A stretch of 64,000 nt of DNA from the sequence record OR545507.1. One strand, 5' to 3'. A program made the position numbers and the translations under genes. This document shows, piece after piece, positions 22,463-64,000 of the stretch; position 1 is the stretch's first letter, and each line of letters starts with the position of its first letter. The notes beneath the pieces were generated by a model. It was not told where the DNA came from. It saw nothing but the letters and a program-made list of their open reading frames with translations, and did no database searches.

Positions 22463-22473
22463 TGTATATTCCT

Positions 22474-44558: not shown

Positions 44559-45056
44559 TTAAGTCACTGCATTATACTTCTCTATAGCATTAGTAATATT
44601 TAATATAGCTTCAGGAACCATTTCTTTATTGTATTCACGTTTTAAATTTTCCATTTTCTTAATAATTTCCAAGAAAAATGGCAAAATACATGAAGTATCT
44701 GTAAAATTACATGAGTACAAAGTACTCATTTGAAATAATTCACCTGAATCAATATTAAGAGATTTGTATTCCTTAACAATGTTTTCGTTTGTATTGAAAA
44801 TATGAAATACTGTTCCCATGTGATGAAGATATACACCATTCTCATTTTGAATATGGCATGGTGTGATTACAATAGCAGTGTTGTCAATATTATTTACTAT
44901 TGATAAACGTAGACTATGTAAACCTAAAATAACAGTACAATCACTTGAACTGCTTTGAATTTGGTCAGCAGTTTGTGTAACACTTGTAATATTTTCCCCA
45001 TCAAGACAACTCTTGATTTTATCAAATGAATTTTTCATTGATTTAGTTAGATACAT
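44559..45056 (-). CDS. family A paralogue
   Basis: SGELFQMSTLY. Confidence 0.7.
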   Translation of the reverse strand: MYLTKSMKNSFDKIKSCLDGENITSVTQTADQIQSSSSDCTVILGLHSLRLSIVNNIDNTAIVITPCHIQNENGVYLHHMGTVFHIFNTNENIVKEYKSLNIDSGELFQMSTLYSCNFTDTSCILPFFLEIIKKMENLKREYNKEMVPEAILNITNAIEKYNAVT

Positions 45057-45460
45057 TTATGAACACCTTCGAAATATTTGATTAATGATTTTATCATATC
45101 GCTACTAATGCCATGTAAGTCAACACCTAAACACTCGTATTGAAAAAAATCAATATCCTCCAGTGTGTTTAGATCAATTTCCACCTTATCATGACCCAAC
45201 GAATTCATAATAACGTTTTTATCATTAATTGTCAAGAAAGTTTTTTTATCTGAACCTAAAAAGATTTTTACATGTTTTTTTGGCATTACATCATAAGATA
45301 AAGATTGTGAACCATAAATGTATATGCCTTCCATTGAACCAATATCTATAAAATATAGACGAATCCCTTTGTGGTATTTTGACTCCTTAGTGATCGCCTC
45401 TATTAGTTCATCTGTGGTTGTTAACCTTGTTTCTTTCTTCTCTAAATTGCTCAAATGCAT
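45047..45460 (-). CDS. family A paralogue
   Basis: EDIDFFQYECL. Confidence 0.65.
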   Translation of the reverse strand: MHLSNLEKKETRLTTTDELIEAITKESKYHKGIRLYFIDIGSMEGIYIYGSQSLSYDVMPKKHVKIFLGSDKKTFLTINDKNVIMNSLGHDKVEIDLNTLEDIDFFQYECLGVDLHGISSDMIKSLIKYFEGVHKCI

Positions 45461-45881
45461 AAAATAATACCTTGATCATTTGTAATGTTTCTGACATTAC
45501 ATCAGCAGAAAATTGAACATCAGTGTATTTTACCATAGTACTTTGAGTAAAGAAAGTAGCTTCAATATCTTCAAGGTCAAATGGTTCATCAAATAAATTA
45601 GTACTGAACATATCAGTTTTTTTCTTATAAGTCAACATAAACTTAGCACTGTATCTCAATACAATTTCATCTTTACTTACTAAAATTCGTGCAATGTTCT
45701 GTCTACCCAGTGTTGTAATGTTAACATTAAACGTATTCTTTCGTGCCTCAACAATATCAACGAAATAACCATCACCTTGGTAAACGTTATGACGAACTTC
45801 TAATCCTTGTTGAACTGTATTGAACAGTGCGTCCTGGATAAAATAATTTGCAGTATCGATGTTTCCTAAAATATCTAACAT
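45408..45881 (-). CDS. family A paralogue (degenerate)
   Basis: EATFFTQSTMV. Confidence 0.6.
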   Translation of the reverse strand: MLDILGNIDTANYFIQDALFNTVQQGLEVRHNVYQGDGYFVDIVEARKNTFNVNITTLGRQNIARILVSKDEIVLRYSAKFMLTYKKKTDMFSTNLFDEPFDLEDIEATFFTQSTMVKYTDVQFSADVMSETLQMIKVLFYAFEQFREERNKVNNHR

Positions 45882-46411
45882 AACTTCTCCTTTATAGCTG
45901 TCATATTTAGAAGAAATTCAGTAAGCAATTCCTCCGTAACATGCTCTGTATACCAGAATATCACAATATCTTTTGAAAGTCGTGTATTCATAAAAATATC
46001 TACTAACTCTTTGTAGAACTCTAGTGTTTCGAGATTTGTGAGAATTAACGAGTACTGAAAGAGTAATTCTTCCGTTAGATTAAATTCTGGATAAAGTAAA
46101 TCATTGAACTCATGTGATGCAGTTTGAACTTTAATTTCTTTGAAGTTATTGGTTATACAACCGGAATAAATATTTCGGTGCAACTCTCTGTACAACGCAG
46201 CATAATCTATGAATTTTGCTTTAGGGTTAAAATCAAGAACACTTTCACCTTTATATGACAATCGGTGGAACGCCGAGAACATAGTCACTTCCCACGGTTG
46301 CTTAATATCTAGCTCAGTAATATCAATATTATTGGACAGAAGAACCGTAAAAATCTCACCAATCTTTAATAGTAACTTAGTACGTGCCAGTGCTACCATC
46401 GGGTCAGTCAT
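45875..46411 (-). CDS. family A paralogue
   Basis: TEELLFQYSLI. Confidence 0.7.
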   Translation of the reverse strand: MTDPMVALARTKLLLKIGEIFTVLLSNNIDITELDIKQPWEVTMFSAFHRLSYKGESVLDFNPKAKFIDYAALYRELHRNIYSGCITNNFKEIKVQTASHEFNDLLYPEFNLTEELLFQYSLILTNLETLEFYKELVDIFMNTRLSKDIVIFWYTEHVTEELLTEFLLNMTAIKEKLC

Positions 46412-46824
46412 TATACACCTTCATATTCATCAAGAAAATCTTCGATAATCATTTCAGCTTCATCCATATGCATAGCATCAACTTCAATGATGCGAACTTT
46501 AGATGCATCCCAAATCATAAAGCTAGGAACATTATCAGGCTCGTAGTCATTTTTGTACTGAACAGCATCATAACCTTGAGCAGTGCAATTCTCAATAAGT
46601 GAACGCCACTCATCATCACTGCCTAAATCTTCACACAGAAGCACGTTATCAACATCAACTTCTAAGGTATGCAAGTATACTGTACATGCGTCTACTACGT
46701 TCAGTGGGCTTCTCAGCTTGCGTAATGCAGCTTCCAAAGCACTGTGTTTACCTCCCATATGAAGACCACCATACGGGATATAAAAGTTATCAATTTTTAC
46801 AGTACTCGCATGATACAGTTTCAT
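46411..46824 (-). CDS. ADP-ribosyltransferase-like small protein
   Basis: LYHAS ... GLHMG ... YKNDYE ... SFMIWD pattern. Confidence 0.5.
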   Translation of the reverse strand: MKLYHASTVKIDNFYIPYGGLHMGGKHSALEAALRKLRSPLNVVDACTVYLHTLEVDVDNVLLCEDLGSDDEWRSLIENCTAQGYDAVQYKNDYEPDNVPSFMIWDASKVRIIEVDAMHMDEAEMIIEDFLDEYEGV

Positions 46825-46833
46825 ATTTCATTC

Positions 46834-47418
46834 CTATTTCAGTACTTTAGTCAATGCTTTCACAGCGGTTTCGAGTTGAGCATAGTCGTTAATTGTAAGG
46901 TAATGAATACCATGTGCCTTCATTTCAGCATCTATTTTACTATATAAATCAAACATGTCAAGGATATGATTGTATGCATATGAAGTATTTGAAACACACA
47001 ATTCTTGGAACAAACGTTCTTCCAAGTCATTCACAACTTCTCCATGAATGTCAAGTACTACACCATCTTTGTAAGTGTAGTACTCTTCACTCCACTCTTC
47101 AGAAAGTCGGAACAGTAACGGATTCCCGCCGAACACTTCCATGTCATAGGAATTTATCTCACTAAGTAGTGTTTCACCTGGTTCTGGTGTGAAGTCAAAA
47201 TATGCGAGTGTTGTACCATCATAGTCCTTGAGTGATATACCAGTATGATTTAAGGTTACTTCACCATAATTATTATTCTTGAACTTGATTTTGATATTAA
47301 TCTCAATGTATTTTATTGTCTCATCATCACTGAAATTGTAATCAACTTTATACTTTTTCCAAAGAAGTTTGATATCTTTGAAGTACTTTAATTTACTTTC
47401 AATTTCTTTAAAGTCCAT
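46834..47418 (-). CDS. family A paralogue
   Basis: LEERLFQELCV. Confidence 0.7.
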   Translation of the reverse strand: MDFKEIESKLKYFKDIKLLWKKYKVDYNFSDDETIKYIEINIKIKFKNNNYGEVTLNHTGISLKDYDGTTLAYFDFTPEPGETLLSEINSYDMEVFGGNPLLFRLSEEWSEEYYTYKDGVVLDIHGEVVNDLEERLFQELCVSNTSYAYNHILDMFDLYSKIDAEMKAHGIHYLTINDYAQLETAVKALTKVLK

Positions 47419-48010
47419 CTGGAACCACCATTTCTTGAATGTGCTTACATTTTATATTTGCCATATTGGTATGTAATATAATGCTGTGTTTACGCAATGA
47501 TTTTACTTTGTAGCACTCATTGAGTACTGAAATAATTCCCCATAACTCTTCTACACTAATAGTGATAGGTTCACTTGTACTCAGTTGCATCAGTGCTGCT
47601 TGAACATCATCTTTGTTATTAATAGTGAACTGGATTCCTCTTTTGAGAATTTTAGTTTTTGGATTGTACTCAGCTAATACATCACCTTCTGGATAACCCT
47701 CATGAAGTAATAATGTTGTTTCAAAATCACCGCAGTTGAAGTTAATTTCATCATAATCAGGTACACAAATGTTCCCTTCCCCGTACTCATTAGGTTCAGA
47801 TTCTAGTGTTAAAATACGCTGAGTCTCATTGCTCAGGATGATAGAATCATTCCAGTACTGGGTAGTGAATGCTCTACGTTTCTTTTGAAAGCACATACTC
47901 GACATTGAACCATACTTCTTGTATATGGACTTCTTGAACTCAATAGCAGCAGGAGCCACCTTGATAACTTCACGAATTAAGTCAATAGCTTCTTGATAAC
48001 TTTTTCTCAT
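47408..48010 (-). CDS. family A paralogue (degenerate)
   Basis: QAALMQLSTS. Confidence 0.65.
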   Translation of the reverse strand: MRKSYQEAIDLIREVIKVAPAAIEFKKSIYKKYGSMSSMCFQKKRRAFTTQYWNDSIILSNETQRILTLESEPNEYGEGNICVPDYDEINFNCGDFETTLLLHEGYPEGDVLAEYNPKTKILKRGIQFTINNKDDVQAALMQLSTSEPITISVEELWGIISVLNECYKVKSLRKHSIILHTNMANIKCKHIQEMVVPDGL

Positions 48011-48558
48011 TTATCGTATCCATATAAAATATGATCTAGTGTACTTTGTACTTCTTCATGAAAGAATGAAGGGTAAACTTGTATCAATTTATCTTTAAGT
48101 TCAAGGGAATGGCATAGTTCTAATGTTTTGTAACAATCCTCGTACTGTGCCAGATCATGTAATGTACTTAACTGAAAATGTTGTTCTTCGGAGTACAATA
48201 AATCATAAACCATATTATCGGATAAAAGATTAGATTTGATTGAAGGATCAAGTACTGTCTGGTGGTGACCAACCCAAAAGATAGCTTTTGAGTTAATGTT
48301 ATTACAACCCCATCCTTTCCCCATCTTTTGGTGAATAGCAAATACACAGGAATCATACAAATTAATGCTCAGACGTTCTTCGTCTGCATGGATAGTTACA
48401 CCATCAATAGATAGTGTATATTTGAAATCCATAGCCCCCTCACTTCGTGCACGAGAACTAAAGACCAGATATCGATGAATTATGGTATTGATTTTATCTG
48501 TCCATCCATCAACACATTTGGATGCACATAATGTAAAAAGATCATGATTGTAGTTCAT
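48007..48558 (-). CDS. family A paralogue
   Basis: SEEQHFQLSTLH. Confidence 0.7.
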   Translation of the reverse strand: MNYNHDLFTLCASKCVDGWTDKINTIIHRYLVFSSRARSEGAMDFKYTLSIDGVTIHADEERLSINLYDSCVFAIHQKMGKGWGCNNINSKAIFWVGHHQTVLDPSIKSNLLSDNMVYDLLYSEEQHFQLSTLHDLAQYEDCYKTLELCHSLELKDKLIQVYPSFFHEEVQSTLDHILYGYDK

Positions 48559-48576
48559 AAAATTCTCCTTTAGGAC

Positions 48577-48605
48577 AATGTATCATACAAAAATACCAGA
48601 GTCAA
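48577..48605 (-). promoter_or_regulatory. sigma70-like promoter
   Basis: TTGACT-17-TACATT with TG. Confidence 0.45.
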
Positions 48606-48619
48606 CCCCTGGTACGAAT

Positions 48620-49201
48620 TTAATCCATCATAAGTGGGATAATTGCCCATATCTTTTTCATAATCATATCTTCAGTAAAAACAAATGTTTTAGGAGCAGT
48701 ATATGATATTGACACACCAAATGGAAGTTTGATTGCATCATCAATTATATTATGAATATCAAACCATGTTTTAACATAATCATACGGTGGAAGTTCATGA
48801 ATTGTACTTAACTGAAAGTAATTCTCTTCACCAAAATCACTATATTCAATTTCACAAATTTTAGTGAATTGATGATTCCATTTAGATATAATACTATTTT
48901 TATTATTGTACATAGTAGTTCTATGCATAAAACCATTTTTGCTAGTATGATTTGATATTACGTTTTCTTCAATGTCAGTATCTATTTTAAAATTCATATC
49001 AAAGTTGTAGTACGGACTTGACGATTCTTTGAATTTTAAATGTAAATTGCGATTGTTATTAATTTCAATTTCAATACAAAACACATCTGAATCAAAACGA
49101 TTAAACTTGTAATCGTTATCTTCCGGTAGATTCTGTATTTTTTTCATAATACTAAGCATAGGGTGTACTACACTTTTAATAAAATCATTTGTTATTTTCA
49201 T
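48620..49201 (-). CDS. family A paralogue
   Basis: GEENYFQLSTIH. Confidence 0.7.
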   Translation of the reverse strand: MKITNDFIKSVVHPMLSIMKKIQNLPEDNDYKFNRFDSDVFCIEIEINNNRNLHLKFKESSSPYYNFDMNFKIDTDIEENVISNHTSKNGFMHRTTMYNNKNSIISKWNHQFTKICEIEYSDFGEENYFQLSTIHELPPYDYVKTWFDIHNIIDDAIKLPFGVSISYTAPKTFVFTEDMIMKKIWAIIPLMMD

Positions 49202-49694
49202 AGTATTCCTTTAGAACTTTATATGATTCAACAATACTATCTTGTGTATAATTTGAACTATATACAACAGCACTTGTTTTAGTTGACCATAGATATGACA
49301 TAAAGGTTATAACACTACTACATGGACTTAATGTATTGTTTTGAAATTCAATTTCTTCAATGTTATCAGTACTGGTATAGATGAATTGGAAAGTACCCAT
49401 TGATTTATTGGACAGCGATACTATAGTAGAATCCGTACCAGGACTATACATGAATGTCTCATTACTAATTGAACTATCATTAGTATATGATGGTTTGGGA
49501 ATATAAATCAAACGCATGATATCGCGTTCAAGACCTGACTTATTACTTTCCACCAAAGAAATCATATCTATATTTGATATATGTTCAACACTGACATGGA
49601 ACTTTTTGTCGAGAATCACATCTCCATGAGAATTTTTATATGAAGACAAAATCTCATACATCTCAACTAATTCGCGTGCATTTAATAAACTCAT
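49185..49694 (-). CDS. family A paralogue
   Basis: IEEIEFQNNTL. Confidence 0.65.
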   Translation of the reverse strand: MSLLNARELVEMYEILSSYKNSHGDVILDKKFHVSVEHISNIDMISLVESNKSGLERDIMRLIYIPKPSYTNDSSISNETFMYSPGTDSTIVSLSNKSMGTFQFIYTSTDNIEEIEFQNNTLSPCSSVITFMSYLWSTKTSAVVYSSNYTQDSIVESYKVLKEYYENNK

Positions 49695-50119
49695 GTTTTG
49701 TCTCTTAATGAAAGAATATCCTTAGTATAAACTGAAACAGAAATATGATTATATTTCATCATTAATTTATACACATAAGAAGCTAGTACTAAATCGTAAA
49801 TTAATTTAGTATTATACAGTACTTGGTATTGTAACGCAAGTGAATCAATATCATCTTTACTTTCAATATCCAGAAATGTACCGAAAAATGTAGTACCGTA
49901 GAGATGAAAAGTGGAATTAATGCAATCAATGCATTCATTGTCCAATAGAGTAGATGCTGATGCCCTCGGTGAATCCCAAATAGTCACTGCGTGTATGCCC
50001 TCAACGAACAAATCTATCCATATTTTGTGTCGTTGTCTTTTTTTTGTTTTATAATTTTCTGGATTTGAAAGTGTAGTTTCAATTATATCCCATATGTACA
50101 AACAATCATCTCTTGTCAT
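49691..50119 (-). CDS. family A paralogue (degenerate)
   Basis: DSLALQYQVLY. Confidence 0.6.
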   Translation of the reverse strand: MTRDDCLYIWDIIETTLSNPENYKTKKRQRHKIWIDLFVEGIHAVTIWDSPRASASTLLDNECIDCINSTFHLYGTTFFGTFLDIESKDDIDSLALQYQVLYNTKLIYDLVLASYVYKLMMKYNHISVSVYTKDILSLRDKT

Positions 50120-50697
50120 TATATAACCTTATCCATTGCTGCATTTAATGCTTTTAAACGATCTACATTCAAATTATTGAAGATGTACGTTCCTAACATG
50201 TGGAAATCGAACTGGTTCTTTTTGTATTCATGATAAATTAAACTACAAAAAATAATAGTACTAAGAACCTCTTCAGGTATAACAGTGCTCATCTGGAACA
50301 GTTCTTCTTCAACTGTACTTGAATCTGGATTGATAGATTTTAACACATACTCTTCATCACCGAATAGTACTTTAATATTATATAAAACACCAACAGTACT
50401 AATATGGAATGGGTGGTGTGAAAAACTTCCATCATCCTTAATTTGTATATCGGTTCTAATCTCACACTCTTCATTACTTTTACTTTTATTTTTTACAATA
50501 CAAATATTTCTGGCCCCAGAAATAGTAAGAATACCGTGGTCGTAATATTCATTTGACCAACATTTGGATGAAATTGATACATCACGGATGAGATATTGTT
50601 TTTCAATTTCTTTCGCACTACCAACAATTGATAGCATTTTTTTACTGATATCATATAATAACTGATGGCGTTCTGTCATATAACTATAAGCGTTCAT
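50119..50697 (-). CDS. family A paralogue
   Basis: VEEELFQMSTVI. Confidence 0.7.
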   Translation of the reverse strand: MNAYSYMTERHQLLYDISKKMLSIVGSAKEIEKQYLIRDVSISSKCWSNEYYDHGILTISGARNICIVKNKSKSNEECEIRTDIQIKDDGSFSHHPFHISTVGVLYNIKVLFGDEEYVLKSINPDSSTVEEELFQMSTVIPEEVLSTIIFCSLIYHEYKKNQFDFHMLGTYIFNNLNVDRLKALNAAMDKVI

Positions 50698-51268
50698 ATT
50701 TTTCCTTAACAGATTCTATATTTTGAAGTAGTGTATTCAGAACATCAGTCTTGCAATTGATAAAATCATTGTACATAACTAGTTCACCACAATCAAGAAT
50801 TTTTGCAGTATCGTAACAAAGCATTAAGTACTCGAATTCTTTGTAATTGTCCAACAAGGATTTCTGGAAAATGAATGCATCTCGAATATCTTCACTTTGG
50901 TCTAATTCTGGTGGAACATCCAACCCAATAAATCCATCATCTTCACTGAAATTAGATTCTACAATTTTATTCATTTTTTCATGTAATGCATTCGCAAATA
51001 CCATATTAGAAGAAATAGAACCAATACGTTCACGATTTCTGGATGTGCGAATGTACATAGTAATCGTATCCCATGAACTTTTAATTTTTTTAGAAAATTC
51101 ATAAGTTTTATATACATCCAACTGAACTGATCCAAAACGATGTTTGGATTTGTTTTCAATTTTCAGTCGATAATCATCAAATTCAACAATTTCTGTAATG
51201 TCATGAATCTCTGAAAGTTCTGCAATGTCATGCATGAGTCTCAAAATTTTAGTTCTGATATGGTTCAT
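50684..51268 (-). CDS. family A paralogue
   Basis: DAFIFQKSLLD. Confidence 0.7.
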   Translation of the reverse strand: MNHIRTKILRLMHDIAELSEIHDITEIVEFDDYRLKIENKSKHRFGSVQLDVYKTYEFSKKIKSSWDTITMYIRTSRNRERIGSISSNMVFANALHEKMNKIVESNFSEDDGFIGLDVPPELDQSEDIRDAFIFQKSLLDNYKEFEYLMLCYDTAKILDCGELVMYNDFINCKTDVLNTLLQNIESVKEKYERL

Positions 51269-51843
51269 TGTGCATCCTCGAATTTAACAGGTACATGTTC
51301 ATTAATGAAATTCTTAAGAGCCTGTACTAAATCCTCTAATTCTTTTGTACTGTATTTTAAAATAGTTTTAAAGTGAATCAAATCTTTTCTTTCCATGATC
51401 TTTGGAATTTTATATGCTAACTCTAAACAGCGTACAGTACTGGCATCATACAAAAGGTTTGCGTTGAACATTAGAACATTGTATTCATCAGATGAAATTT
51501 TATAATTATATGTATCAATCACTTCATGTGTGTATAAATTCTTATACACAATTTTATTCTCACTGAAGTTTGAGCAAACACACAGATGATCGTTGTAAAA
51601 TGAAGAACGATAATCTTGTTTACGTTGTACATCTGCTATGATTTGTAATACTGTATATTTTTCTTCAGAATCCAACTCAATGTTTGCATAACTGCTCGCA
51701 GTTTCAGATACAAGGATATTGATGTTATATTTCTCATTAACTTTAATGTACTGGCGTGAGCCAGTATCAGGAATGAACTTAAAACAATGCTTCAGAAGTA
51801 ATGTGACTTCTTTAATTAATTCAGTACTCATAGATTCCTCCAA
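51265..51843 (-). CDS. family A paralogue (degenerate)
   Basis: DEYNVLMFNANLLY. Confidence 0.6.
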   Translation of the reverse strand: MEESMSTELIKEVTLLLKHCFKFIPDTGSRQYIKVNEKYNINILVSETASSYANIELDSEEKYTVLQIIADVQRKQDYRSSFYNDHLCVCSNFSENKIVYKNLYTHEVIDTYNYKISSDEYNVLMFNANLLYDASTVRCLELAYKIPKIMERKDLIHFKTILKYSTKELEDLVQALKNFINEHVPVKFEDAQ

Positions 51844-51858
51844 CTCTAGTTAAAATCA

Positions 51859-51887
51859 AGTATAACACACCTGAATGCTCTTGTAAA
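51859..51887 (-). promoter_or_regulatory. sigma70-like promoter
   Basis: TTTACA-17-TATACT with TG. Confidence 0.6.
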
Positions 51888-51896
51888 GCCATAAAC

Positions 51897-51920
51897 ACAA
51901 AAAGACCCATACGGGTCTTT
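51897..51920 (-). terminator. rho-independent terminator
   Basis: AAAGACCC-n4-GGGTCTTT plus T-run. Confidence 0.75.
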
Positions 51921-52485
51921 ATTTTGGTAAAACACTGTCGATGTACGCTAGAACCTCATCTCGAAGGTACGTTCCATCTATAGTTAGGTAATAGTTCATG
52001 GGAATATCACTCCCAACCTTCTCATAAATTTTCATACATGATATCACATCTTCATCACAAATGGTACTCAATTGAAAAATAACTTCATCGGTTAACGGTA
52101 CGATATCATGTTTAGATAGGGGATTTGTATTTTCATTCAACACAATATTAATCAAGTTAGGAGTATTCTTTGACGAAATATAACGATGCTTACTACGAAT
52201 TACCATTCTCGATAGTGAAATACTGGAACTCCATCTTGGATCAACATCTTCATATGATAACGATATTAACATCTCGTGAAAATCTTGAAATTTCATTGAC
52301 GCATAATATGTTTTATCCTCACCGTACATACCAAATGATTTAAATTCAATATCCCCCACTTTGTATGTATCGACATCATTATTTGAGAACTTTATTAAAC
52401 TATTAATTAGTCTAATTAGAATATCATCTTTATCCATTCTTAAATAACTCCAAGTGCATGTCGTATAAATCTCTGAAGTCTTCAT
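51919..52485 (-). CDS. family A paralogue
   Basis: TDEVIFQLSTIC. Confidence 0.7.
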   Translation of the reverse strand: MKTSEIYTTCTWSYLRMDKDDILIRLINSLIKFSNNDVDTYKVGDIEFKSFGMYGEDKTYYASMKFQDFHEMLISLSYEDVDPRWSSSISLSRMVIRSKHRYISSKNTPNLINIVLNENTNPLSKHDIVPLTDEVIFQLSTICDEDVISCMKIYEKVGSDIPMNYYLTIDGTYLRDEVLAYIDSVLPK

Positions 52486-52993
52486 AGAAATCTTTTTCTT
52501 CGAGAATATTCTTTAAACTGGGAATCTCTTCCATAATTTCATCTATATCTGATTCTATGAAAAATCCTGATGGATTATCGTAGTTTTGTAACAGATAACT
52601 GAAAGTAATAATGTAAAGAAGTTCATTAGGATTGTGAATTAAACTTAGCTGGAACATAGCTGATTCTAAATCTGATTCAGTACTAAGATCAACCCAACGT
52701 GAATTTCTATAATCAATTCGTACTTGACTTGTATTTGGATTCCATGTGAAGCAATGTGTACCAATATGACCTATACAACCAACCCTTGTACTGTCTCCGG
52801 TATCAACACTGATATCAACAAATAGTTCAATACCGATATCGGTTGATGTTACACGACCTTTTTTCAGAAATAAATCATTATCCTTACGAAATTGTTTGGA
52901 TGAAAGAGTGTCAATGATGCACATCAATGTTTTTGCAAATGCAACACAATGACGAAATTCAAGCCTATGAAATTGGTAATCATTGATATTCAT
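52430..52993 (-). CDS. family A paralogue
   Basis: ESAMFQLSLIH. Confidence 0.7.
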   Translation of the reverse strand: MNINDYQFHRLEFRHCVAFAKTLMCIIDTLSSKQFRKDNDLFLKKGRVTSTDIGIELFVDISVDTGDSTRVGCIGHIGTHCFTWNPNTSQVRIDYRNSRWVDLSTESDLESAMFQLSLIHNPNELLYIITFSYLLQNYDNPSGFFIESDIDEIMEEIPSLKNILEEKDFYEDFRDLYDMHLELFKNG

Positions 52994-55699: not shown

Positions 55700-55732
55700 T
55701 GTGATATAACCCTTTACAATTAATATAAAGAG

Positions 55733-55762
55733 ATTATATCACAAAGAATCGGAGGGTGTCAA
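55733..55762 (-). promoter_or_regulatory. sigma70-like promoter (extended -10)
   Basis: TTGACA-18-TATAAT with TG. Confidence 0.65.
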
Positions 55763-56343
55763 GATGGGTTGCGAAGTTCTACCATTTCTTTCCAAACTAA
55801 TTGGTAATCTTCTAAGTCCAGATAGAAGTCTTCATTCCAGTGCTCATGAAAGTACTTATACATGAATAGAACTCCTAAATCGTATGCAGGAAACAATAAT
55901 GATAGTTGAAAGTAGTATTCCTGATTTAAAACTATATCAATAAACTCTAATGTACGTATGCCACCTTTCGATGAACGTATCTCAATGTGTGAGGTATCCT
56001 TCATACTGTAACACATGAAACCACCTCTAAATTCTGGATCATATTCACATTCGAACTGCTCACTGTTGTTATAGAAATCTCTCCCACTTTCTTGATCTTT
56101 CGGTCTACGTACTGATACATGAATATTTTTATCACGGTACATTGAACGATTTAGTATTTTCAAACATTTGAACTTATCTTCTTTAATGAACTTGATAATA
56201 TCAATTATATCTTGTGCTGTACTGATAGCTGATTCGAATGTATCCAACTTAAGATGATTATATTGGGTTCCAGAGTTCATTTTTTTATCTAACATATAAA
56301 CCTCATAATTCATACATTTTTGATTTGAACTGCATATGACCAC
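55759..56343 (-). CDS. family A paralogue
   Basis: QEYYFQLSLLF; true start probably downstream of 56343. Confidence 0.7.
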   Translation of the reverse strand: MVICSSNQKCMNYEVYMLDKKMNSGTQYNHLKLDTFESAISTAQDIIDIIKFIKEDKFKCLKILNRSMYRDKNIHVSVRRPKDQESGRDFYNNSEQFECEYDPEFRGGFMCYSMKDTSHIEIRSSKGGIRTLEFIDIVLNQEYYFQLSLLFPAYDLGVLFMYKYFHEHWNEDFYLDLEDYQLVWKEMVELRNPS

Positions 56344-56644
56344 CTATTTCACATGGATAACAATTCATAATTTTGTTCAATAGAATCTGGTATTTTTTAA
56401 TAACTTCTATATCAATTTTTATATTACTATTAAAAACTAATGATTCTTGAAATAATTCCCCCTCGTCAAGTGAAGTAAAATCATTTATCTTCAAGGGTAT
56501 ATTGTTGCATCGCAAGGAGAATGTATTTTCATCACGAATTAAAGTATAGAAATCATTATGTTTTTTATTATAATCAAATTTAACAAGTAGTAGTTTAATA
56601 TGAGTAGCGTACATTACTTTAACTAATTCAGATTCACGTCGCAT
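56303..56644 (-). CDS. family A paralogue
   Basis: DFTSLDEGELFQESLVF. Confidence 0.7.
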   Translation of the reverse strand: MRRESELVKVMYATHIKLLLVKFDYNKKHNDFYTLIRDENTFSLRCNNIPLKINDFTSLDEGELFQESLVFNSNIKIDIEVIKKYQILLNKIMNCYPCEIGGHMQFKSKMYEL

Positions 56645-57066
56645 ACAATACCTCTCTTATGATGCAAACATTCTTGCATAATGTGTTGTATTTTTCGTAA
56701 CAGAAACACATCCAGTTCATTAAAAACAGTACTGTACTGGAACATCTCTTCTTCCCCGTACTCAGTTAAATCATCAATTTCATCTCTAGAAACAGCTACA
56801 ATATTAAAACCACGTGTACTACAATAACCCTTAGTAAGATAATATATGTACTTGTACTCTCCGTTGATATCTAAGAGATCTTGTGTGATACAGAAGCTTT
56901 TGGGTGACAGTTTATCATCAGGAACCATATGCCTTGCTTGTACATAGCAACGGATACCATCACCTATACTATATGTAATAACTTCAAATTCAATCTTCAT
57001 AGGTGAATATAATCCTTTTATATTGCTCAGGTGCAGTACTGAAACGTTTGATTGGATAATTATCAA
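56623..57066 (-). CDS. family A paralogue
   Basis: GEEEMFQYSTVF. Confidence 0.7.
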   Translation of the reverse strand: MIIIQSNVSVLHLSNIKGLYSPMKIEFEVITYSIGDGIRCYVQARHMVPDDKLSPKSFCITQDLLDINGEYKYIYYLTKGYCSTRGFNIVAVSRDEIDDLTEYGEEEMFQYSTVFNELDVFLLRKIQHIMQECLHHKRGIVCDVNLN

Positions 57067-57352
57067 AGATTCTTTTCATTTCTTTCTGGATTAAACATAA
57101 GAAATCAAAGTTACAATCGTACTTATTATCCCATACTAAACTTTCTTGGAATAACTCATCCTCTTGCATTAGTGTAGTGTCAATTACATCTTCACGGACA
57201 TAGCTATATACTTCATAGCTCTTGAAGCCATCTTCTGATAATTCTAATTCATATGCAGCCATATCAAACATATCATCATGGTTTGTCTTCAAAGATATTA
57301 AACAAGTAACTAATTTTTTAGTTGTATAGTATGTAATACTTAATGTGTTCAT
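56990..57352 (-). CDS. family A paralogue
   Basis: DTTLMQEDELFQESLVW. Confidence 0.7.
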   Translation of the reverse strand: MNTLSITYYTTKKLVTCLISLKTNHDDMFDMAAYELELSEDGFKSYEVYSYVREDVIDTTLMQEDELFQESLVWDNKYDCNFDFLCLIQKEMKRIFDNYPIKRFSTAPEQYKRIIFTYED

Positions 57353-57357
57353 TTGTT

Positions 57358-57960
57358 TTATACCTCAGTATATAGCTTACAATAGCTTTCATCGAAATTA
57401 CAAACACTTCTCAAGTACTGACACAGGTCATTGAAAATATTTACATTTGATATATATACATTATCAAATTCTGTTCGTTGAAAGAATGTATACATAGAAT
57501 TTGTAATATATCGCATTGCATCTTCACGTCCCATAGTTATATCATTTGTGAACATTGCATCTTCATCAGTACTGATGTGTTCTATTTTAAATGATTTCAT
57601 AAATGGAATACTCTTTCCTAGGGCATAACCATCACCATATGATGCTTCTACTGCACCTTTAGAATAAAGGAATTGATATAAGTCCGAATCACGATTATAA
57701 AAAGTACGACATACGGAGGAACATAATTTATTATCTATATGAAATAAAAATCTTTTAGCATTTTTGTCTAATACTATTCGCAATGCATCACTCTCTAGAA
57801 ATATATCACCATCAAGCATAAATGAGAACTGTACTAATGCTTTTTCTAAATCCGCTCGTTTGTGATAAATCATTTCCTGCATATATATAATATCATTTGC
57901 TAATTTCTTAAAAAACAAATGCACATCTGCACTACAACATTTATTTGCATTTATTGACAT
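57358..57960 (-). CDS. family A paralogue (degenerate)
   Basis: TDEDAMFTNDI. Confidence 0.6.
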   Translation of the reverse strand: MSINANKCCSADVHLFFKKLANDIIYMQEMIYHKRADLEKALVQFSFMLDGDIFLESDALRIVLDKNAKRFLFHIDNKLCSSVCRTFYNRDSDLYQFLYSKGAVEASYGDGYALGKSIPFMKSFKIEHISTDEDAMFTNDITMGREDAMRYITNSMYTFFQRTEFDNVYISNVNIFNDLCQYLRSVCNFDESYCKLYTEV

Positions 57961-58511
57961 AATAGTTCCTTATACATATGATGTACTTTACAAATCTCAT
58001 TATAGTATTTCATATCAATGTCATTTGTATTAAAAACGGAAACAGACAATACTGCTAACTTATCAATTAAGTAATTATTATCGGCGTACTGTTTTAACTT
58101 ATTGAACATATAGATGCATTTTATACTTAATTCATCATGCAACACACTGTTCTGAAAAATATTCTCTTCAGTATTAGGAGATAAGTAATCTTCAATTATA
58201 TACGATAAACTACTATCGCAATCTTTATAGATTGAAATTGATGGATGTAATGTGTCATACATTACACTAAACAGATCACCGTCATATGTGGATATTAAAC
58301 TATTATTGGAAACAGTAGGATGATAATATTTCAGTACTGAAAACTTTGAACAATCAGTGCAGTAAAAATGATCCATCCCTCGACGACTTTCGTATGAGAA
58401 TAGTTTACTTGTATATTCAATCCCTTTGGTGCGACGGATTGTTTCATGCATTTCTGCACATTGCATTAAAATTACCATACGTTCAAACGCAAGATCTAAA
58501 TCATCGTACAT
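57951..58511 (-). CDS. family A paralogue
   Basis: TEENIFQNSVLH. Confidence 0.7.
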   Translation of the reverse strand: MYDDLDLAFERMVILMQCAEMHETIRRTKGIEYTSKLFSYESRRGMDHFYCTDCSKFSVLKYYHPTVSNNSLISTYDGDLFSVMYDTLHPSISIYKDCDSSLSYIIEDYLSPNTEENIFQNSVLHDELSIKCIYMFNKLKQYADNNYLIDKLAVLSVSVFNTNDIDMKYYNEICKVHHMYKELLCQ

Positions 58512-58692
58512 AACGGATATCCTTCTTCAACGAATTAATATATTCCAAAATAACTTGTTCCTGATATTGGGTTCCCAAGTACATCAGTACTTTCAACTCT
58601 TTGAATTCAGTACTATATGAGTCTGTTTGCATCATTCTAGTAGAATATATATTGAATAGTTTAGCAATATCATCTTGGTCTATTATTTTCAT
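58501..58692 (-). CDS. small hypothetical protein
   Basis: ORF track; weakly similar to 58670..58888. Confidence 0.55.
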   Translation of the reverse strand: MKIIDQDDIAKLFNIYSTRMMQTDSYSTEFKELKVLMYLGTQYQEQVILEYINSLKKDIRYVR

Positions 58693-58888
58693 TAACCCTC
58701 TTCTGTATTAGTTCCTGTAAGTGCTGAATATAACCCTTCATTGCAACATCCTGTTTGTTAGAGCCAACGAAGAACAAGAGCTTAAAGTCATGGTAATCCA
58801 TTTTTGGTTTAGTAGTGAACCATATGTCCCACACTGCACTCACAGTTCTCATGTATTCAATTCGATTAAATGTTTTTGAATACTTCAT
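58670..58888 (-). CDS. small hypothetical protein
   Basis: ORF track. Confidence 0.55.
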   Translation of the reverse strand: MKYSKTFNRIEYMRTVSAVWDIWFTTKPKMDYHDFKLLFFVGSNKQDVAMKGYIQHLQELIQKRVNENNRPR

Positions 58889-59402
58889 CGATGTTCATTG
58901 CCAATAAGTTAATATACAAATTACTGTTAAATGCTATCTGCAATTCCATATAGAACTGAATGATTGCATAGTCAGGGTCAGTACACGATAGTTGAAAACA
59001 CTGTTCGTCGAATGCATTGTAATTGTACTTAGGGATGTGAATTTCACGCTTCAAATCAGGTTGCCCCCACTTCATCGCGTACACACCAATGTTATTGTTC
59101 TTTTTCCTTTTCTTAAATGTTAATTGTTGAATATTTCCTGCGTTATCCAGGAAAATAGAATTATTCGACACAGGTGCACCAATAGAAAACAATGATGTAT
59201 CAATTACGTGTTTCTCACGTACATCACACTTCTGAAATGCACCTGTACCCTGTAATACACGATGAAAATTGTACTTCTCATTAACAACAGTACTAGGATC
59301 AATTAAACCAGTACTGCATTTTTTGAGTACTGGTACGATGATACGAATCTTTTTTGATAAATCTTGTAATGCATCAAAGTCATTGATGTTAACTTTCATC
59401 AC
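58866..59402 (-). CDS. family A paralogue
   Basis: DEQCFQLSCT. Confidence 0.7.
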   Translation of the reverse strand: MMKVNINDFDALQDLSKKIRIIVPVLKKCSTGLIDPSTVVNEKYNFHRVLQGTGAFQKCDVREKHVIDTSLFSIGAPVSNNSIFLDNAGNIQQLTFKKRKKNNNIGVYAMKWGQPDLKREIHIPKYNYNAFDEQCFQLSCTDPDYAIIQFYMELQIAFNSNLYINLLAMNIDEVFKNI

Positions 59403-59848
59403 TCAAATGTGGCCTCTTCAGTAGTAACAAAATTGATTAGTGTATCCAGTTCAGCAGTGTCAAGATAAAATACATCCAGTACTGATTTCTGATATATTAC
59501 ACTGAATGTGCATAGATTGTCAAGCGTTCCTTGTTCATAAACAGTACTACCCTGGAAGTACCCTTCTTCAGTACTCAGGGATAAAATGTCTGAAATTTTA
59601 AAAGATTCTTCAGTCGCATGTCTTTCTATATTAACTAAATGTCCGTTTCGGTTCAATGAAATATAATCGTATGCTAACTCAATTAGACTATAATTATCCG
59701 CATTAGTGTCAAATAAAGCGACAATTTTTCGTCTCAATCTCTCATCGTGATCATGGTTTTCATCAGCTAAGTATTCAGGATTTTCTTTGAAGAACTGAAC
59801 AACTTTTAGAATATCATTTGCTTTCTTGATTGCACTTTCGTAACTCAT
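59399..59848 (-). CDS. family A paralogue
   Basis: TEEGYFQGSTVY. Confidence 0.7.
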   Translation of the reverse strand: MSYESAIKKANDILKVVQFFKENPEYLADENHDHDERLRRKIVALFDTNADNYSLIELAYDYISLNRNGHLVNIERHATEESFKISDILSLSTEEGYFQGSTVYEQGTLDNLCTFSVIYQKSVLDVFYLDTAELDTLINFVTTEEATFE

Positions 59849-60153
59849 AATAATTCAACCACTCCATCTCTAAAGTACATATAACTACCACCATTGGATA
59901 CCTTGAATTCTATTGTCCCCAATAATATATTATATTTTTTTATTTCACATGTAGTACTGGTAGTGTAAGGCTCACCATCTCCTAAGTACATTGACATATG
60001 ACATAGAACTTTTCTACCTGCATATTTCTCTTCAAACGATTGTTCAAAACTATGCATAATTTGATTTAAAGCTGAAATGTAATTAATAAAGTCAGGTATT
60101 TCTGTCAATGAATTATAAACCGTACAAAGTGAATCAAATTCATTTTTAGTCAT
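59845..60153 (-). CDS. family B paralogue inside the family A array
   Basis: FEEKYAGRKVLC. Confidence 0.6.
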   Translation of the reverse strand: MTKNEFDSLCTVYNSLTEIPDFINYISALNQIMHSFEQSFEEKYAGRKVLCHMSMYLGDGEPYTTSTTCEIKKYNILLGTIEFKVSNGGSYMYFRDGVVELL

Positions 60154-60467
60154 TATATTTCTATCTCAATGTAATCCTGTGTGATTAAGTAATCCCAATG
60201 ATACTTCACCTGCTTTTGTAATTCAATTAACGTAAAGAAGTTGATCGATTTATCCCATACGAGCGATTCCTGGAAAATAAATGATTCATGTTCATCGTAA
60301 TAATCACACTCTAAAAAATCAGGTATATATTCACTATCGTGAATGTATTCAACAAACGAACTAGCTTGGCATTTCTTTACTACTAGTAATAATGAATTAT
60401 CATGATCAAACAGATACAATAAACTAATTTCACCAGGGACGTACTGAACACTGAATAAGTTTTTCAT
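60153..60467 (-). CDS. family A paralogue
   Basis: ESFIFQESLVWD. Confidence 0.7.
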   Translation of the reverse strand: MKNLFSVQYVPGEISLLYLFDHDNSLLLVVKKCQASSFVEYIHDSEYIPDFLECDYYDEHESFIFQESLVWDKSINFFTLIELQKQVKYHWDYLITQDYIEIEI

Positions 60468-60916
60468 TCTATACCTTCTGGATCTTTACGAAGTTCTTCG
60501 AAATCCAAATAAAATCGAGGACAGTTAACACTCTTTAAGTACCACATAATAACTAATGCTTCAAGTACTTCATCATCGTAAACAGTACTGTTTTGGAAGT
60601 AATACTCTTCACTATCCCACGGACCATCCAGTACTTCATAATTCAAAATTAATGGTTTTTTGCGATTAATAAAACGAATGCTACCATTTTCAACATAACT
60701 AATAAATTCTGCATCTCTATTGTATTCAGAAAACGATATAGGACTATTGGAATTCAACCCAAGAATAACCCTTACACCCACGGAGTTATTATACATTTCA
60801 TCTTTGTAGTAGTTGCCGTTCTCGGCTTTGTACACTTCTTTGAACTTTCCTGCCTTTATATCGTCAAAGTATCCATGTAGTTCTTTTGCTTTTTCAAGAG
60901 CACTTTGTAATGACAT
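60464..60916 (-). CDS. family A paralogue (GPW subgroup)
   Basis: VLDGPWDSEEYYFQNSTVY. Confidence 0.75.
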   Translation of the reverse strand: MSLQSALEKAKELHGYFDDIKAGKFKEVYKAENGNYYKDEMYNNSVGVRVILGLNSNSPISFSEYNRDAEFISYVENGSIRFINRKKPLILNYEVLDGPWDSEEYYFQNSTVYDDEVLEALVIMWYLKSVNCPRFYLDFEELRKDPEGIE

Positions 60917-61382
60917 TACCTTCTCCTACAGTATTCTCTACATATTCATAATCAAAATAGAAACTACTGGAGTCAATACTTTTGAAATACCACATAATTA
61001 CAATAACATCTAATTCTTCTTCATTGTACAACGTACTATTCTGGAAGTAATATTCTTCACTATCCCACGGTCCTTCCAGTACTGAATAAGGAATGATAGT
61101 GTCATCAGCATCACTATCTGTGTTGTAGATGGTAATATCTTCATTACGGCAATAACTAATGTACTGATTGTACATATGATATTCACAGTTATCACTGTCA
61201 CCAGTATCAGTGTGCAGTACTAATGTTTCTGCACATATCTCGGACTCGTCATAATCGTCACGGTCTTTTACAAAAAATTCAGTATCAGATGTTTTATATA
61301 CACCTGGTACTGAACCTTCCTGTACCATAATCATGTACTCATGAATCTTCTTTGCTTCTTTCAATGCACTTTGTAATGACAT
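60894..61382 (-). CDS. family A paralogue (GPW subgroup)
   Basis: VLEGPWDSEEYYFQNSTLY. Confidence 0.75.
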   Translation of the reverse strand: MSLQSALKEAKKIHEYMIMVQEGSVPGVYKTSDTEFFVKDRDDYDESEICAETLVLHTDTGDSDNCEYHMYNQYISYCRNEDITIYNTDSDADDTIIPYSVLEGPWDSEEYYFQNSTLYNEEELDVIVIMWYFKSIDSSSFYFDYEYVENTVGEGNVITKCS

Positions 61383-61825
61383 TACAAATCCCCTGTACTT
61401 AAATATTCACATGCTCCCCAGTCAAGAAAGAATGGTTCAAAATTCAATTCCTTAAAGTACCACAACACAACCAAGGAATCAAGAATTTCTTGGTTAAAAA
61501 TGAGACTCTGTTGGAAGTAATACTCTTCAGTACCCCACGGGCCATCAAGTACCCCGAAGTCAACAGGTGTATTTGTTGTGTCAAAAGTAATCTTAGTACC
61601 TGGAATATATACAAAAAAATTAGTATATTGACTACATGAAGAGTACTGTATAGTATTGTCTTTATCCTGTCCCATAAGTAAAATATCATCAGAGTATGTC
61701 TTTATACCTGATAGATAATACTCATCACCAAATGCACTTACTTTATCACCATAGAACCCACTTTTTATGTTATCGTGGAAGTGATGTATTCTGTGTGCTA
61801 GTTCAAGTGCACTTGCTAAACTCAT
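61382..61825 (-). CDS. family A paralogue (GPW subgroup)
   Basis: VLDGPWGTEEYYFQQSLIF. Confidence 0.75.
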   Translation of the reverse strand: MSLASALELAHRIHHFHDNIKSGFYGDKVSAFGDEYYLSGIKTYSDDILLMGQDKDNTIQYSSCSQYTNFFVYIPGTKITFDTTNTPVDFGVLDGPWGTEEYYFQQSLIFNQEILDSLVVLWYFKELNFEPFFLDWGACEYLSTGDL

Positions 61826-62292
61826 ATATCCTCTTTAATAACTCGTAGTAGATCCAAGTCCAAATAGAAGCTAGGACAATCTGTATTATTAAAGTACCAC
61901 AGAATGACAAGCTTGTCAAGTACATCTTCCTCGTAGATAGTATTCTGCTGGAAGTAGTACTCTTCACTTCCCCAGTCATTATCCAGTACTGAATACGGAA
62001 GATGTTTCTCTGCTGCACCAGATATAATGTCAGAATCTTGTATTAAAATATCAGCATCACGACAGAAGTACATGTAATTATCTTCCAAATTAACATCACA
62101 CCCATTGAGTGTTGTTTCAGAAGAATCTAAGTTTTCTTCATACATGTGAATGTACTCACTACTGTCATCGTATCTCATTCGACAATATGATTTACCTTCC
62201 TTGAATAGATATCCATTAAGACAATTTGCTACAATTTCTTTGCTGCATAAATCAATTAACTTCGCAATCTCTAATGCTCTTTCTAAACTCAT
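61822..62292 (-). CDS. family A paralogue (GPW subgroup)
   Basis: VLDNDWGSEEYYFQQNTIY. Confidence 0.75.
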   Translation of the reverse strand: MSLERALEIAKLIDLCSKEIVANCLNGYLFKEGKSYCRMRYDDSSEYIHMYEENLDSSETTLNGCDVNLEDNYMYFCRDADILIQDSDIISGAAEKHLPYSVLDNDWGSEEYYFQQNTIYEEDVLDKLVILWYFNNTDCPSFYLDLDLLRVIKEDI

Positions 62293-62293
62293 T

Positions 62294-62785
62294 TCAACCC
62301 CTGTTAATACCGTTATCTACAGTTTTCTTTACGTATTTGTAATCGAAATAGAAGTTCCCAGAACCAATACTTTTAAAGTACCACATAATTATAATAACAT
62401 CAAGTACTTCATTATCATATACAGTACTTTGTTGGAAGTAATACTCTTCACTATCCCACGGACCTTCCAGTACTTCACTCGGAATTATAATGTCATTGGA
62501 ATCGCTGTCAGTACTGTTGATGGTATCTGTATCATTAATATAGACCATGTACTCATTATGCATATTAATGAAGCATTCATAATCATTAGGGTCGGTATCT
62601 AGTATGCACGTTTCTGTATCCAGTACGCACGTTTCTGTATCTGAGCAGTCATTATAAAGGAGGTTATCCGGTACATAATATTGAGTACTTGTGTCTTTGA
62701 AAACACCGTAAACTGAACCTTCTTTTGCCATATTCATGTACTCATGAATCTTCTTTGCTTTTTCCAATGAACTCTGTAATGTCAT
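62294..62785 (-). CDS. family A paralogue (GPW subgroup)
   Basis: VLEGPWDSEEYYFQQSTVY. Confidence 0.75.
   Translation of the reverse strand: MTLQSSLEKAKKIHEYMNMAKEGSVYGVFKDTSTQYYVPDNLLYNDCSDTETCVLDTETCILDTDPNDYECFINMHNEYMVYINDTDTINSTDSDSNDIIIPSEVLEGPWDSEEYYFQQSTVYDNEVLDVIIIMWYFKSIGSGNFYFDYKYVKKTVDNGINRG
62595..62642. repeat. 21-bp tandem duplication (ETCVLDT/ETCILDT)
   Basis: gtatctagtatgcacgtttct / gtatccagtacgcacgtttct / gtatct. Confidence 0.85.
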
Positions 62786-62794
62786 TTTATAATC

Positions 62795-63154
62795 TCATAT
62801 ATTGAAATAATAATTATTCGTTCTTGATGGGGATGGATTAAATACGTTTTCTTTTTCAAATCTCTTCATTTCATTTTGCAAAGAAACCATTTCTTCAAAT
62901 GTACAGGAGTACTTATTCTTATCAAACACTAATGCAGCCTGAAATAGTTCCCCATCGTCCAGTACTGTATAATCTATAAGACTCTCAGATTCATAGTCAT
63001 AGTCGTCATGTGATACATGAATAAATTTAAAACAAGAATCTTTGTAATGCATATATAAACTCAACTCATGTTCCGAGTCGCCCTTAATAAGATTACAGCA
63101 CAAGTCCCATCCTTTAGGTAACTTATAATAGTACATAGAATAATCATATGTCAT
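62795..63154 (-). CDS. family A paralogue
   Basis: DYTVLDDGELFQAALVFD. Confidence 0.7.
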   Translation of the reverse strand: MTYDYSMYYYKLPKGWDLCCNLIKGDSEHELSLYMHYKDSCFKFIHVSHDDYDYESESLIDYTVLDDGELFQAALVFDKNKYSCTFEEMVSLQNEMKRFEKENVFNPSPSRTNNYYFNI

Positions 63155-63507
63155 TCTTGAATTCCTAAATTGAATTTGTATTCTTGATTAATACTTGCAT
63201 TGGGTTTATGCAAAGCAGCATACTCTTTCATTTCATTTTGTATTGCAATAACTTCTTCAAATGTACACAAGTACTTCTTATCAAATACTAATGATTCTTG
63301 GAATAGTTCTGCGGTATCCATTAATGTATAGTCCGGCATATCTTGGTGTGGATACTGTAATGAACTGTAATCAATGAATGTAAATTTACCCTGAGTGTAA
63401 TGAATATACTCATTTGCACTGTGCATTAAATCACCTTTGTTTAAATTACAAAAGTACTGATAACTGTGCTTGAAAGTATGTACTGATATTAAAAAATCAA
63501 ATTCCAT
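63151..63507 (-). CDS. family A paralogue
   Basis: DYTLMDTAELFQESLVFD. Confidence 0.7.
   Translation of the reverse strand: MEFDFLISVHTFKHSYQYFCNLNKGDLMHSANEYIHYTQGKFTFIDYSSLQYPHQDMPDYTLMDTAELFQESLVFDKKYLCTFEEVIAIQNEMKEYAALHKPNASINQEYKFNLGIQE
63428..63471. repeat. 44-bp direct repeat, copy 1
   Basis: aaatcacctttgtttaaattacaaaagtactgataactgtgctt, identical to 63957-64000. Confidence 0.9.
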
Positions 63508-63878
63508 CAGTACTCAACCTCTACATAAATAGATTCAGGAAACTTAGTCATATAATCTTCTGGATAGTTCTGCATTACTTTGATCATTTCTGCCTGTGTA
63601 GCACGGACGTATTCAATTGGTGCTCCTGGTAAATTCCAGACAGTACTTTCCTGAAAGAATTCCTCTTCTGACAGTACTGTCAGATTTACAAAATCATTAC
63701 GGTAATTTTTTGAATCATCATATGTGAAGATTTTAAAAGACCCATTTTCATATAGTACAAGAACAAAATGGGAGAATTTTTGTAATGCACCACCAAGGCT
63801 TTCCACGACCGCATGATTCAGTGTACAGATGACCTCTTTTTTCCTCATACCGAATTGAATTCTAATTTCTTTTTTCAT
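63507..63878 (-). CDS. family A paralogue
   Basis: TVLSEEEFFQESTVW. Confidence 0.7.
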   Translation of the reverse strand: MKKEIRIQFGMRKKEVICTLNHAVVESLGGALQKFSHFVLVLYENGSFKIFTYDDSKNYRNDFVNLTVLSEEEFFQESTVWNLPGAPIEYVRATQAEMIKVMQNYPEDYMTKFPESIYVEVEY

Positions 63879-64000
63879 AAAATCTCCTTCAGATTAGTAC
63901 TGAATTTGTACAGAATATTAGAACTGTATACAGCCTCTGTATCTGTATCCATAATCAAATCACCTTTGTTTAAATTACAAAAGTACTGATAACTGTGCTT
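63875..64000 (-). CDS. 3' end of a gene that duplicates the 5' part of 63151..63507
   Basis: ...KHSYQYFCNLNKGDLIMDTDTEAVYSSNILYKFSTNLKEIL*, ATGA overlap with the start at 63878. Confidence 0.55.
   Translation of the reverse strand, partial: KHSYQYFCNLNKGDLIMDTDTEAVYSSNILYKFSTNLKEIL
63957..64000. repeat. 44-bp direct repeat, copy 2 (may extend beyond the window)
   Basis: Identical to 63428-63471. Confidence 0.9.

Follow-up and report, generated by a model that had tools for sequence, protein, structure and literature searches.

A tandem array of FQxS genes in RaK2-like jumbo phages as the expansion of one small protein family with a predicted alpha/beta fold

The 64,000-nucleotide stretch of DNA analysed here (sequence record OR545507.1, called the window in what follows) carries on its minus strand a long tandem array of small genes, most of whose products share an acidic FQxS motif. 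We find that the array is a lineage-specific expansion of one small single-domain family, predicted to be of alpha/beta type, in which purifying selection maintains every copy as a real gene, and that the FQxS family is common to the RaK2-like jumbo phages of enterobacteria. The window is 100% identical to Escherichia phage vB_EcoM_G17 (MK327931.1; Asteriusvirus, a RaK2-like jumbo phage) and to phage Sharanji, and base n of the window corresponds to base n + 270,449 of the G17 record. The phages phAPEC6 and 121Q are 98-99% identical to the region (98.2% for 121Q). In all the phage records compared, the gene annotation across the region is 'hypothetical' throughout, and in the literature we found no study of the function, motif, structure or expression of the family.

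The array is built from one protein family

The part of the array that lies in the window consists of 42 consecutive open reading frames (ORFs), which fall into four blocks. ORFs are named by their first coordinate, and membership is based on hidden Markov model (HMM) and jackhmmer searches.

44559-63878, minus strand: tandem FQxS array, window part; 42 consecutive ORFs, 35 of them in the FQxS family; runs on beyond base 64000
55759-63878, minus strand: block A, 20 ORFs; direct members 63507, 63151, 62795, 62294, 61822, 61382, 60894, 60464, 60153, 59399, 57951, 56990, 56623, 56303 and 55759; 58866 linked transitively
51919-55699, minus strand: block B, 8 ORFs, all family; direct members 55223, 54732, 54404, 54007, 53516, 52430 and 51919; 52990 linked through 51919
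48620-51843, minus strand: block C, 6 ORFs, all family; direct members 50119 and 48620; 51265, 50684, 49691 and 49185 linked transitively
44559-48558, minus strand: block D, 8 ORFs; direct members 48007, 45875 and 44559; 46834 and 45047 linked transitively; 47408, 46411 and 45408 unlinked

A pairwise blastp comparison clusters 19 of the ORFs, and an iterated HMM joins 25. Wider profiles, to which were added 106 database representatives and then the G17 copies upstream of the window together with copies from phages A4, Turkey5 and EC.P1, brought in 48007 and 48620, so that 27 ORFs are linked directly. Jackhmmer searches from each remaining ORF against a pool of 765 local sequences linked a further eight transitively, with more than 90% of the recruited sequences lying inside the family set. 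In this way 35 of the 42 ORFs form one family, and the profile homology among members that the original prediction (a reading of this DNA from its letters alone) had put forward for checking is found. The members are highly diverged, with a mean column identity of ~16% outside the motif. They span PHROGs 9317, 12674, 34017, 13866, 28549 and others, all of unknown function, and there are cross-matches between these PHROGs.

The family does not end with the window. A further 12 HMM-supported copies and three motif-only candidates lie upstream of it, at 334,328-343,706 of the G17 record. Together with one outlying copy (32207-32896) this makes ~48 supported copies over ~28.7 kb, about 8% of the genome. 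The array had originally been bounded at 44559-63878; the right-hand end was wrong, and should be placed at ~343,706 of the G17 record.

The motif is conserved at the protein level

FQxS is present in 27 of the 42 ORFs, at 39-74 amino acids (aa) from the C-terminus, and five more (45047, 46834, 49185, 61822 and 62795) have FQ in the same acidic context without the complete motif. The resulting 32 is the number of ORFs with a literal FQ that the original prediction had counted; the motif pattern that it wrote down is too narrow, fitting only 12 ORFs when taken literally. The motif is concentrated in the array: on the minus strand it occurs in 27 of 51 ORFs there but in only 4 of 114 below 44000, and the 90 plus-strand ORFs all lack it.

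Over 294 sequences the phenylalanine is conserved at 100%, the glutamine at 99% and the serine at 86%, and the two preceding acidic positions are glutamate in 73-74%. The residue that follows the glutamine is variable and often bulky, the three commonest accounting for 27, 17 and 16%. Synonymous codons are mixed at F (14/13), at Q (16/11) and at S, where both codon boxes are used. Thus the motif is conserved as protein, and a DNA-level repeat as its source is rejected.

A single compact domain is predicted

Structures were predicted for one long and one short member of the family; pLDDT is the predicted local distance difference test and pTM the predicted template modelling score.

62294-62785, minus strand: long-form reference member, 163 aa; AlphaFold2 with 25 paralogues as the alignment, pLDDT 89.9, pTM 0.84
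63151-63507, minus strand: short-form reference member, 118 aa; AlphaFold, pLDDT 79.8, pTM 0.78

The model of the long form comprises an N-terminal helix, six strands, two short helices, a long helix (residues 125-139), a strand and a last helix. The second short helix, at 113-119, carries F117 and Q118, and the pLDDT of this motif helix is above 90. In the short form the core is the same, minus the N-terminal and C-terminal helices. The fold common to both models is a beta-meander followed by the motif helix, the long helix and a closing strand. The N-terminal helix and beta-sheet can be aligned by profile across the long members. Among the 294 sequences indels occur mostly at model positions 24-60, and the N-terminal and long helices keep their hydrophobic periodicity.

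On the evidence of these models each member would be one compact alpha/beta domain, the family varying in its beta-hairpin loops and in the presence of the terminal helices. A different architecture had been proposed from the sequence, with a variable N-terminal domain attached to a constant docking module. Both models depict a single compact domain in which the FQ helix lies inside the confident part, and the division into two modules is not supported.

The family is confined to RaK2-like phages among the matches found

How general is the FQxS family? A search of 1.84 billion representatives returned only 106 clusters at E <= 0.001, of which 96 carry FQx[ST]. The named sources of the database matches are Asteriusvirus genomes or ~350-kb contigs labelled E. 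coli. In a comparison with predicted viral structures (BFVD), all seven matches at E <= 0.001 were proteins of RaK2-like phages, as were nearly all of those down to E = 0.3 (121Q, RaK2, GAP32, SP27, Yersinia fHe-Yen9-03 and -04, and Serratia BF). Copy number among relatives, which had been suggested as a check, ranges widely. In Klebsiella phage K64-1 (Alcyoneusvirus) the family numbers at least 30 copies, which share the motif and lie in the syntenic place upstream of the RNA ligase and polynucleotide kinase genes, and Pectobacterium phage CBB has ~3 weak copies at the same place.

Scans of members and non-members against Pfam, NCBIfam and PHROGs gave nothing informative, and the family has no match in Pfam or NCBIfam. 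A sequence profile search of the PDB gave matches at chance level only. Foldseek comparison of both models with the PDB gave nothing at E <= 0.001, the best values being E = 2.4 for the long form and E = 0.09 for the short form, which has a non-significant likeness to sheet-plus-helix platforms. Two kinds of protein were looked for specifically. There was no Pfam match to SUKH / SMI1_KNR4 in any of 25 members, even at E = 5, and no fold match (Foldseek, PDB); nor was there a PDB sequence match or a fold match to DNA-mimic anti-restriction proteins of the Ocr or ArdA type. Most members are acidic, with a median isoelectric point (pI) of ~5, but their net charge spans +6 to -26, and the products of the flanking genes are acidic too.

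The proteins do not appear to be carried in the virion. The phAPEC6 orthologues (gp404c-gp445c) are missing from the published table of 62 virion proteins, in which nothing is listed between gp347 and gp549 (PMC7247149); virion proteomics had been among the checks originally proposed.

Each copy is maintained, and the array is mosaic

Comparison of G17 with EC.P1, in which the copies are syntenic one to one, shows how the array evolves. For 33 pairs of family members the median ratio of non-synonymous to synonymous substitution (dN/dS) is 0.20 and the median amino acid identity 78.6%, compared with 0.13 and 87.3% for the flanking genes (n = 81). The array copies are under purifying selection yet diverge faster than the genes that flank them; positive selection is not borne out by the dN/dS values. 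The synonymous divergence dS swings from ~0.01 to above 3 between neighbouring genes of the array, which suggests mosaic recombination, with segments of the array exchanged between phages.

Most of the A4 and Turkey5 copies share 25-50% identity with those of G17, compared with 85-89% for the flanking gene 44043. Only the G17/phAPEC6 group has copy 56623, and EC.P1 and ph0011 both lack 59845. Relatives differ, then, by allelic replacement and by the presence or absence of copies. The youngest duplicates are neighbours: the five long copies at 60464-62785 are 35-56% identical over near-full-length alignments, and 62795 pairs with 63151.

Some features of related phages were observed in passing. 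A family member of phage A4 (locus 8165-8701) is annotated 'DNA ligase' and is probably mislabelled. The array of the same phage also contains an inserted gene (locus 22232-23644; 470 aa) that carries the label 'methyl-accepting chemotaxis protein' and has no counterpart in G17. In Salmonella phage SD-1_S14 two of the 42 array genes were not found, and for about a dozen the match covers under 60% of the gene; this record is ~40 kb shorter than those of relatives, and the loss could be real decay or poor assembly.

The blocks are bounded by conserved transcription signals

The genes are tightly coupled, as had been noted from the sequence. Adjacent ORFs overlap at 34 of the 41 junctions (ten by 4 nucleotides (nt) and five by 1 nt), and only three gaps are longer than 12 nt. 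The following signals lie at the block boundaries.

55733-55762, minus strand: sigma-70-type promoter in front of block B, agreeing with the consensus at 12 of 12 hexamer positions, with extended -10 (TG); gap 55700-55758
51901-51920, minus strand: intrinsic terminator at the end of block B, which the G17 record annotates too; hairpin conserved in EC.P1, A4 and Turkey5
51859-51887, minus strand: sigma-70-type promoter with extended -10, heading block C; 10 of 12 hexamer matches plus TG; gap 51844-51918; conserved in EC.P1, A4 and Turkey5
48593-48615, minus strand: intrinsic terminator at the end of block C, which the G17 record annotates too; gap 48559-48619
48577-48605, minus strand: promoter-like site in front of block D, weaker than the other two; seen in the gap sequence, absent from the promoter-scan list

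The two intergenic promoters scored by the scan match the host sigma-70 consensus closely, and both hexamers of that at 55733 are conserved in EC.P1, A4 and Turkey5. These promoters and the terminator hairpin are conserved although many of the array coding sequences have strongly diverged in A4 and Turkey5. Of the signals proposed earlier, both scored promoters (55733 and 51859) are confirmed, as is the terminator, here placed at 51901-51920; the site at 48577 is promoter-like but weaker and off the scan list, and in EC.P1 the gap that holds it has shrunk to ~12 nt. We found no published transcriptome for Asteriusvirus or another RaK2-like enterobacterial phage.

The genomic setting

Reading leftward from the right terminal repeat of G17, a single strand carries ~30 tiny ORFs, then the FQxS array, and then the genes for RNA ligase 1, polynucleotide kinase/phosphatase (PNKP), DNA ligase, a Sir2-family protein, PIN-PhoH and NrdD. 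In T4 the pairing of PNKP with RNA ligase 1 is the classical counter to host anticodon nucleases. The recognizable genes of this region, together with an outlying member of the family 12 kb downstream of the array, are as follows.

32207-32896, minus strand: FQxS family member outside the array, 12 kb downstream of it; matches the family profiles at E = 3e-5 to 6e-6
30803-31945: RNA ligase 1, of the T4-type RNA repair pair
28774-29706: PNKP, of the T4-type RNA repair pair
21044-22462, same strand as the array, downstream: ATP-dependent DNA ligase
20233-21036, same strand as the array, downstream: metallophosphatase
12879-13637, same strand as the array, downstream: Sir2-family protein
10202-11641, same strand as the array, downstream: PIN-PhoH
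6969-7940, same strand as the array, downstream: WGR-domain protein
1324-3192, same strand as the array, downstream: NrdD

Beside the outlying member is a 192-aa ORF (32893-33471) whose relation to the family is borderline, with E values of 0.004-0.07 and an alignment limited to the motif region.

The array is found at one end of the Sharanji record, so it might have belonged to the terminal repeat, which was reported as 20.7 kb in the Sharanji paper. This is rejected. The G17 repeats occupy 1 to ~20.7 kb and 350,150-370,817, and the array stops ~6.4 kb short of the right-hand one.

Seven ORFs stand apart from the family. Five of these (45408, 46411, 47408, 57358 and 59845) have no significant profile link to it by HMM or jackhmmer, and two tiny ORFs form a separate tandem family nested in the array.

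59845-60153, minus strand: unlinked 102-aa ORF, possibly a shortened copy; motif-like remnant at the N-terminus; the EC.P1 slot holds a 147-aa family member
58501-58888, minus strand: two tiny ORFs (58501 and 58670; 63 and 72 aa) of the separate nested family, PHROG 4148
57358-57960, minus strand: unlinked 200-aa ORF in block A; degenerate motif-like string only, no profile link
47408-48010, minus strand: unlinked 200-aa ORF with MQ replacing FQ; hhalign probability 17.5%, motif only
46411-46824, minus strand: non-family 137-aa acidic ORF; no motif, no profile link; PHROG 11632, function unknown
45408-45881, minus strand: unlinked 157-aa ORF; motif remnant shifted by one residue, no profile link

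The ph0011 orthologue of 46411-46824 is labelled a 'putative' ADP-ribosyl transferase, an assignment that found no support in Pfam or PDB sequence searches. The PHROG 4148 family, of ~70 residues, has 30 more copies in G17 between the array and the right terminal repeat (record ~341.9-350.05 kb), with a median pairwise identity of 31%. This array of tiny ORFs may be that of more than 30 tandem genes reported for phage 121Q (PMC5646251).

What might the FQxS proteins do?

The function that we tentatively favour, at somewhat under even chances, is that of an early library of cytoplasmic proteins, diversified to bind or inhibit host targets, in which the FQxS helix would be the keystone of the fold. 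The host-type promoters, the position of the array, the absence of the proteins from virions, the selection on each copy and the loop-centred diversification all fit such a role. The genes would be transcribed early by the host RNA polymerase and the proteins would act in the cytoplasm, where the variable beta-hairpin loops and optional N-terminal helix of each member could engage a different host target, involved either in defence or in takeover of the cell. The invariant acidic helix would then hold the fold together, rather than serve as a separate docking module. Of the original prediction as a whole, the large library of paralogues with an invariant acidic FQxS signature survives, and it is plausible that the proteins have a host-directed role that is non-structural and probably early; its two-module architecture finds no support.

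Several points tell against the binder library. The early timing is deduced from promoter type and position only. The family has no homology or fold match to any known adaptor, binder, anti-defence or effector family in Pfam, NCBIfam, PHROGs, the PDB or by Foldseek. The dN/dS values are raised only mildly, with no arms-race signal. Lastly, the near-absolute invariance of the glutamine over three genera exceeds what is usually needed to maintain a fold, and fits a shared functional site.

It is this invariance of the glutamine that keeps a common-partner model alive. The array could be a library of adaptors, in which the FQxS helix docks every member onto one common phage or host hub and the variable parts recruit clients, a scheme we regard as unlikely. 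The near-fixed F, Q and S recur in K64-1, while the remainder of the sequence has drifted to the low identity given above, and from helix periodicity the second glutamate and the glutamine would lie on one face. Set against this, the models contain no separable module, the motif helix lying in high-confidence segments of one domain, and we identified neither a candidate hub nor any similarity to known adaptor families. A more specific version, to which we give a still smaller chance, draws an analogy with the substrate-receptor and adaptor families of large eukaryotic viruses. Here some fifty receptors would share one FQxS docking helix and deliver different host proteins to a single hub, for which a protease, RNA polymerase or a phage enzyme would be candidates. 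If true, the phage would possess a broad and evolvable way to disable host systems.

Four other explanations are less likely. Improbable, in our estimation, is an array of immunity type, whose members would neutralize toxic enzymes of the host, of competing phages or of the phage itself, in the manner of the orphan immunity arrays of polymorphic toxins. Small, mostly acidic, tandem and highly diverged proteins would suit this, and RNA-repair genes that counter host nucleases are nearby; yet Pfam gives no match to SUKH/SMI1_KNR4 or to any other immunity family, fold comparison gives none either, and no toxin genes were recognized in or beside the array. We are more doubtful again of non-virion helpers of morphogenesis, such as chaperones for fibres and whiskers. 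These phages have unusually complex sets of fibres (PMC7247149, PMC5259590) and the proteins are absent from virions, but the array lies among small early-type and nucleotide-metabolism genes, far from the structural modules and behind sigma-70 consensus promoters, and CBB has whiskers with only its ~3 weak copies.

Neutral filler, arising by tandem duplication after enlargement of the capsid as discussed for 121Q by Hua et al., is very unlikely. Some neighbours are indeed each other's closest paralogue, but the dN/dS of ~0.2 in 33 orthologue pairs, the intact frames, the one-to-one synteny and the conservation into another genus already disfavour it. Least credible of all is that the motif is the site at which a glutamine-specific protease processes every member, an idea prompted by a resemblance of the acidic-aromatic-glutamine pattern to some viral cysteine protease sites. 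The position after the glutamine varies and frequently holds a bulky residue, the motif is modelled with confidence as part of a helix, and no protease was recognized among the ORFs scanned.

Jumbo phages carry many unexplained genes, and here ~29 kb of a 350-kb genome is given over to one family of orphan fold, kept in at least two genera under purifying selection. With a profile, a motif, two confident models, mapped promoters and a comparison of copy number, a block of 'hypothetical proteins' becomes a tractable family. Should the members prove to be target-specific binders, they would provide a rich source of new inhibitors of bacterial proteins, and an example of a phage diversifying one scaffold. 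Should the FQxS helix be a docking site instead, it would reveal a hub of host takeover.

Comparison with known systems

The array resembles the early accessory and counter-defence regions of T4-like and T5-like phages in its small genes, its strong host-type promoters and its variability between relatives; those regions likewise adjoin a terminal repeat or early genes of nucleotide metabolism and RNA repair. They differ in containing many unrelated genes of measured early timing, whereas the FQxS array is ~50 copies of one fold whose timing is inferred. The orphan immunity arrays of polymorphic toxins, such as those of the SUKH superfamily, are also tandem sets of highly diverged, small and often acidic alpha+beta proteins. 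The FQxS array departs from these in having no Pfam or fold match to them and no adjacent toxin genes.

Among jumbo phages there are several precedents for multiplied genes. Phages 121Q and RaK2 belong to the same clade as G17, and in RaK2 about 10% of the gene products are paralogous (PMC3622015); the papers on these two phages do not define the family, its motif, fold or extent, or the expression signals (PMC5646251, PMC3622015). The paralogous head and ejected proteins of phiKZ (PF12699; 10.1101/2025.11.23.690004) are similarly a multi-copy family of a jumbo phage, but are virion proteins processed by the head protease, whereas the FQxS orthologues are absent from the virion proteome of phAPEC6. 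In Bacillus phage G the multiplied domain is a recognizable Zn-ribbon that suggests DNA binding, unlike the FQxS fold with no recognizable relative (PMC7824862). Yet with its ~35 copies the Zn-ribbon family is, like FQxS, a small domain that has expanded within a single jumbo-phage lineage, and for which a function has so far only been proposed (PMC7824862).

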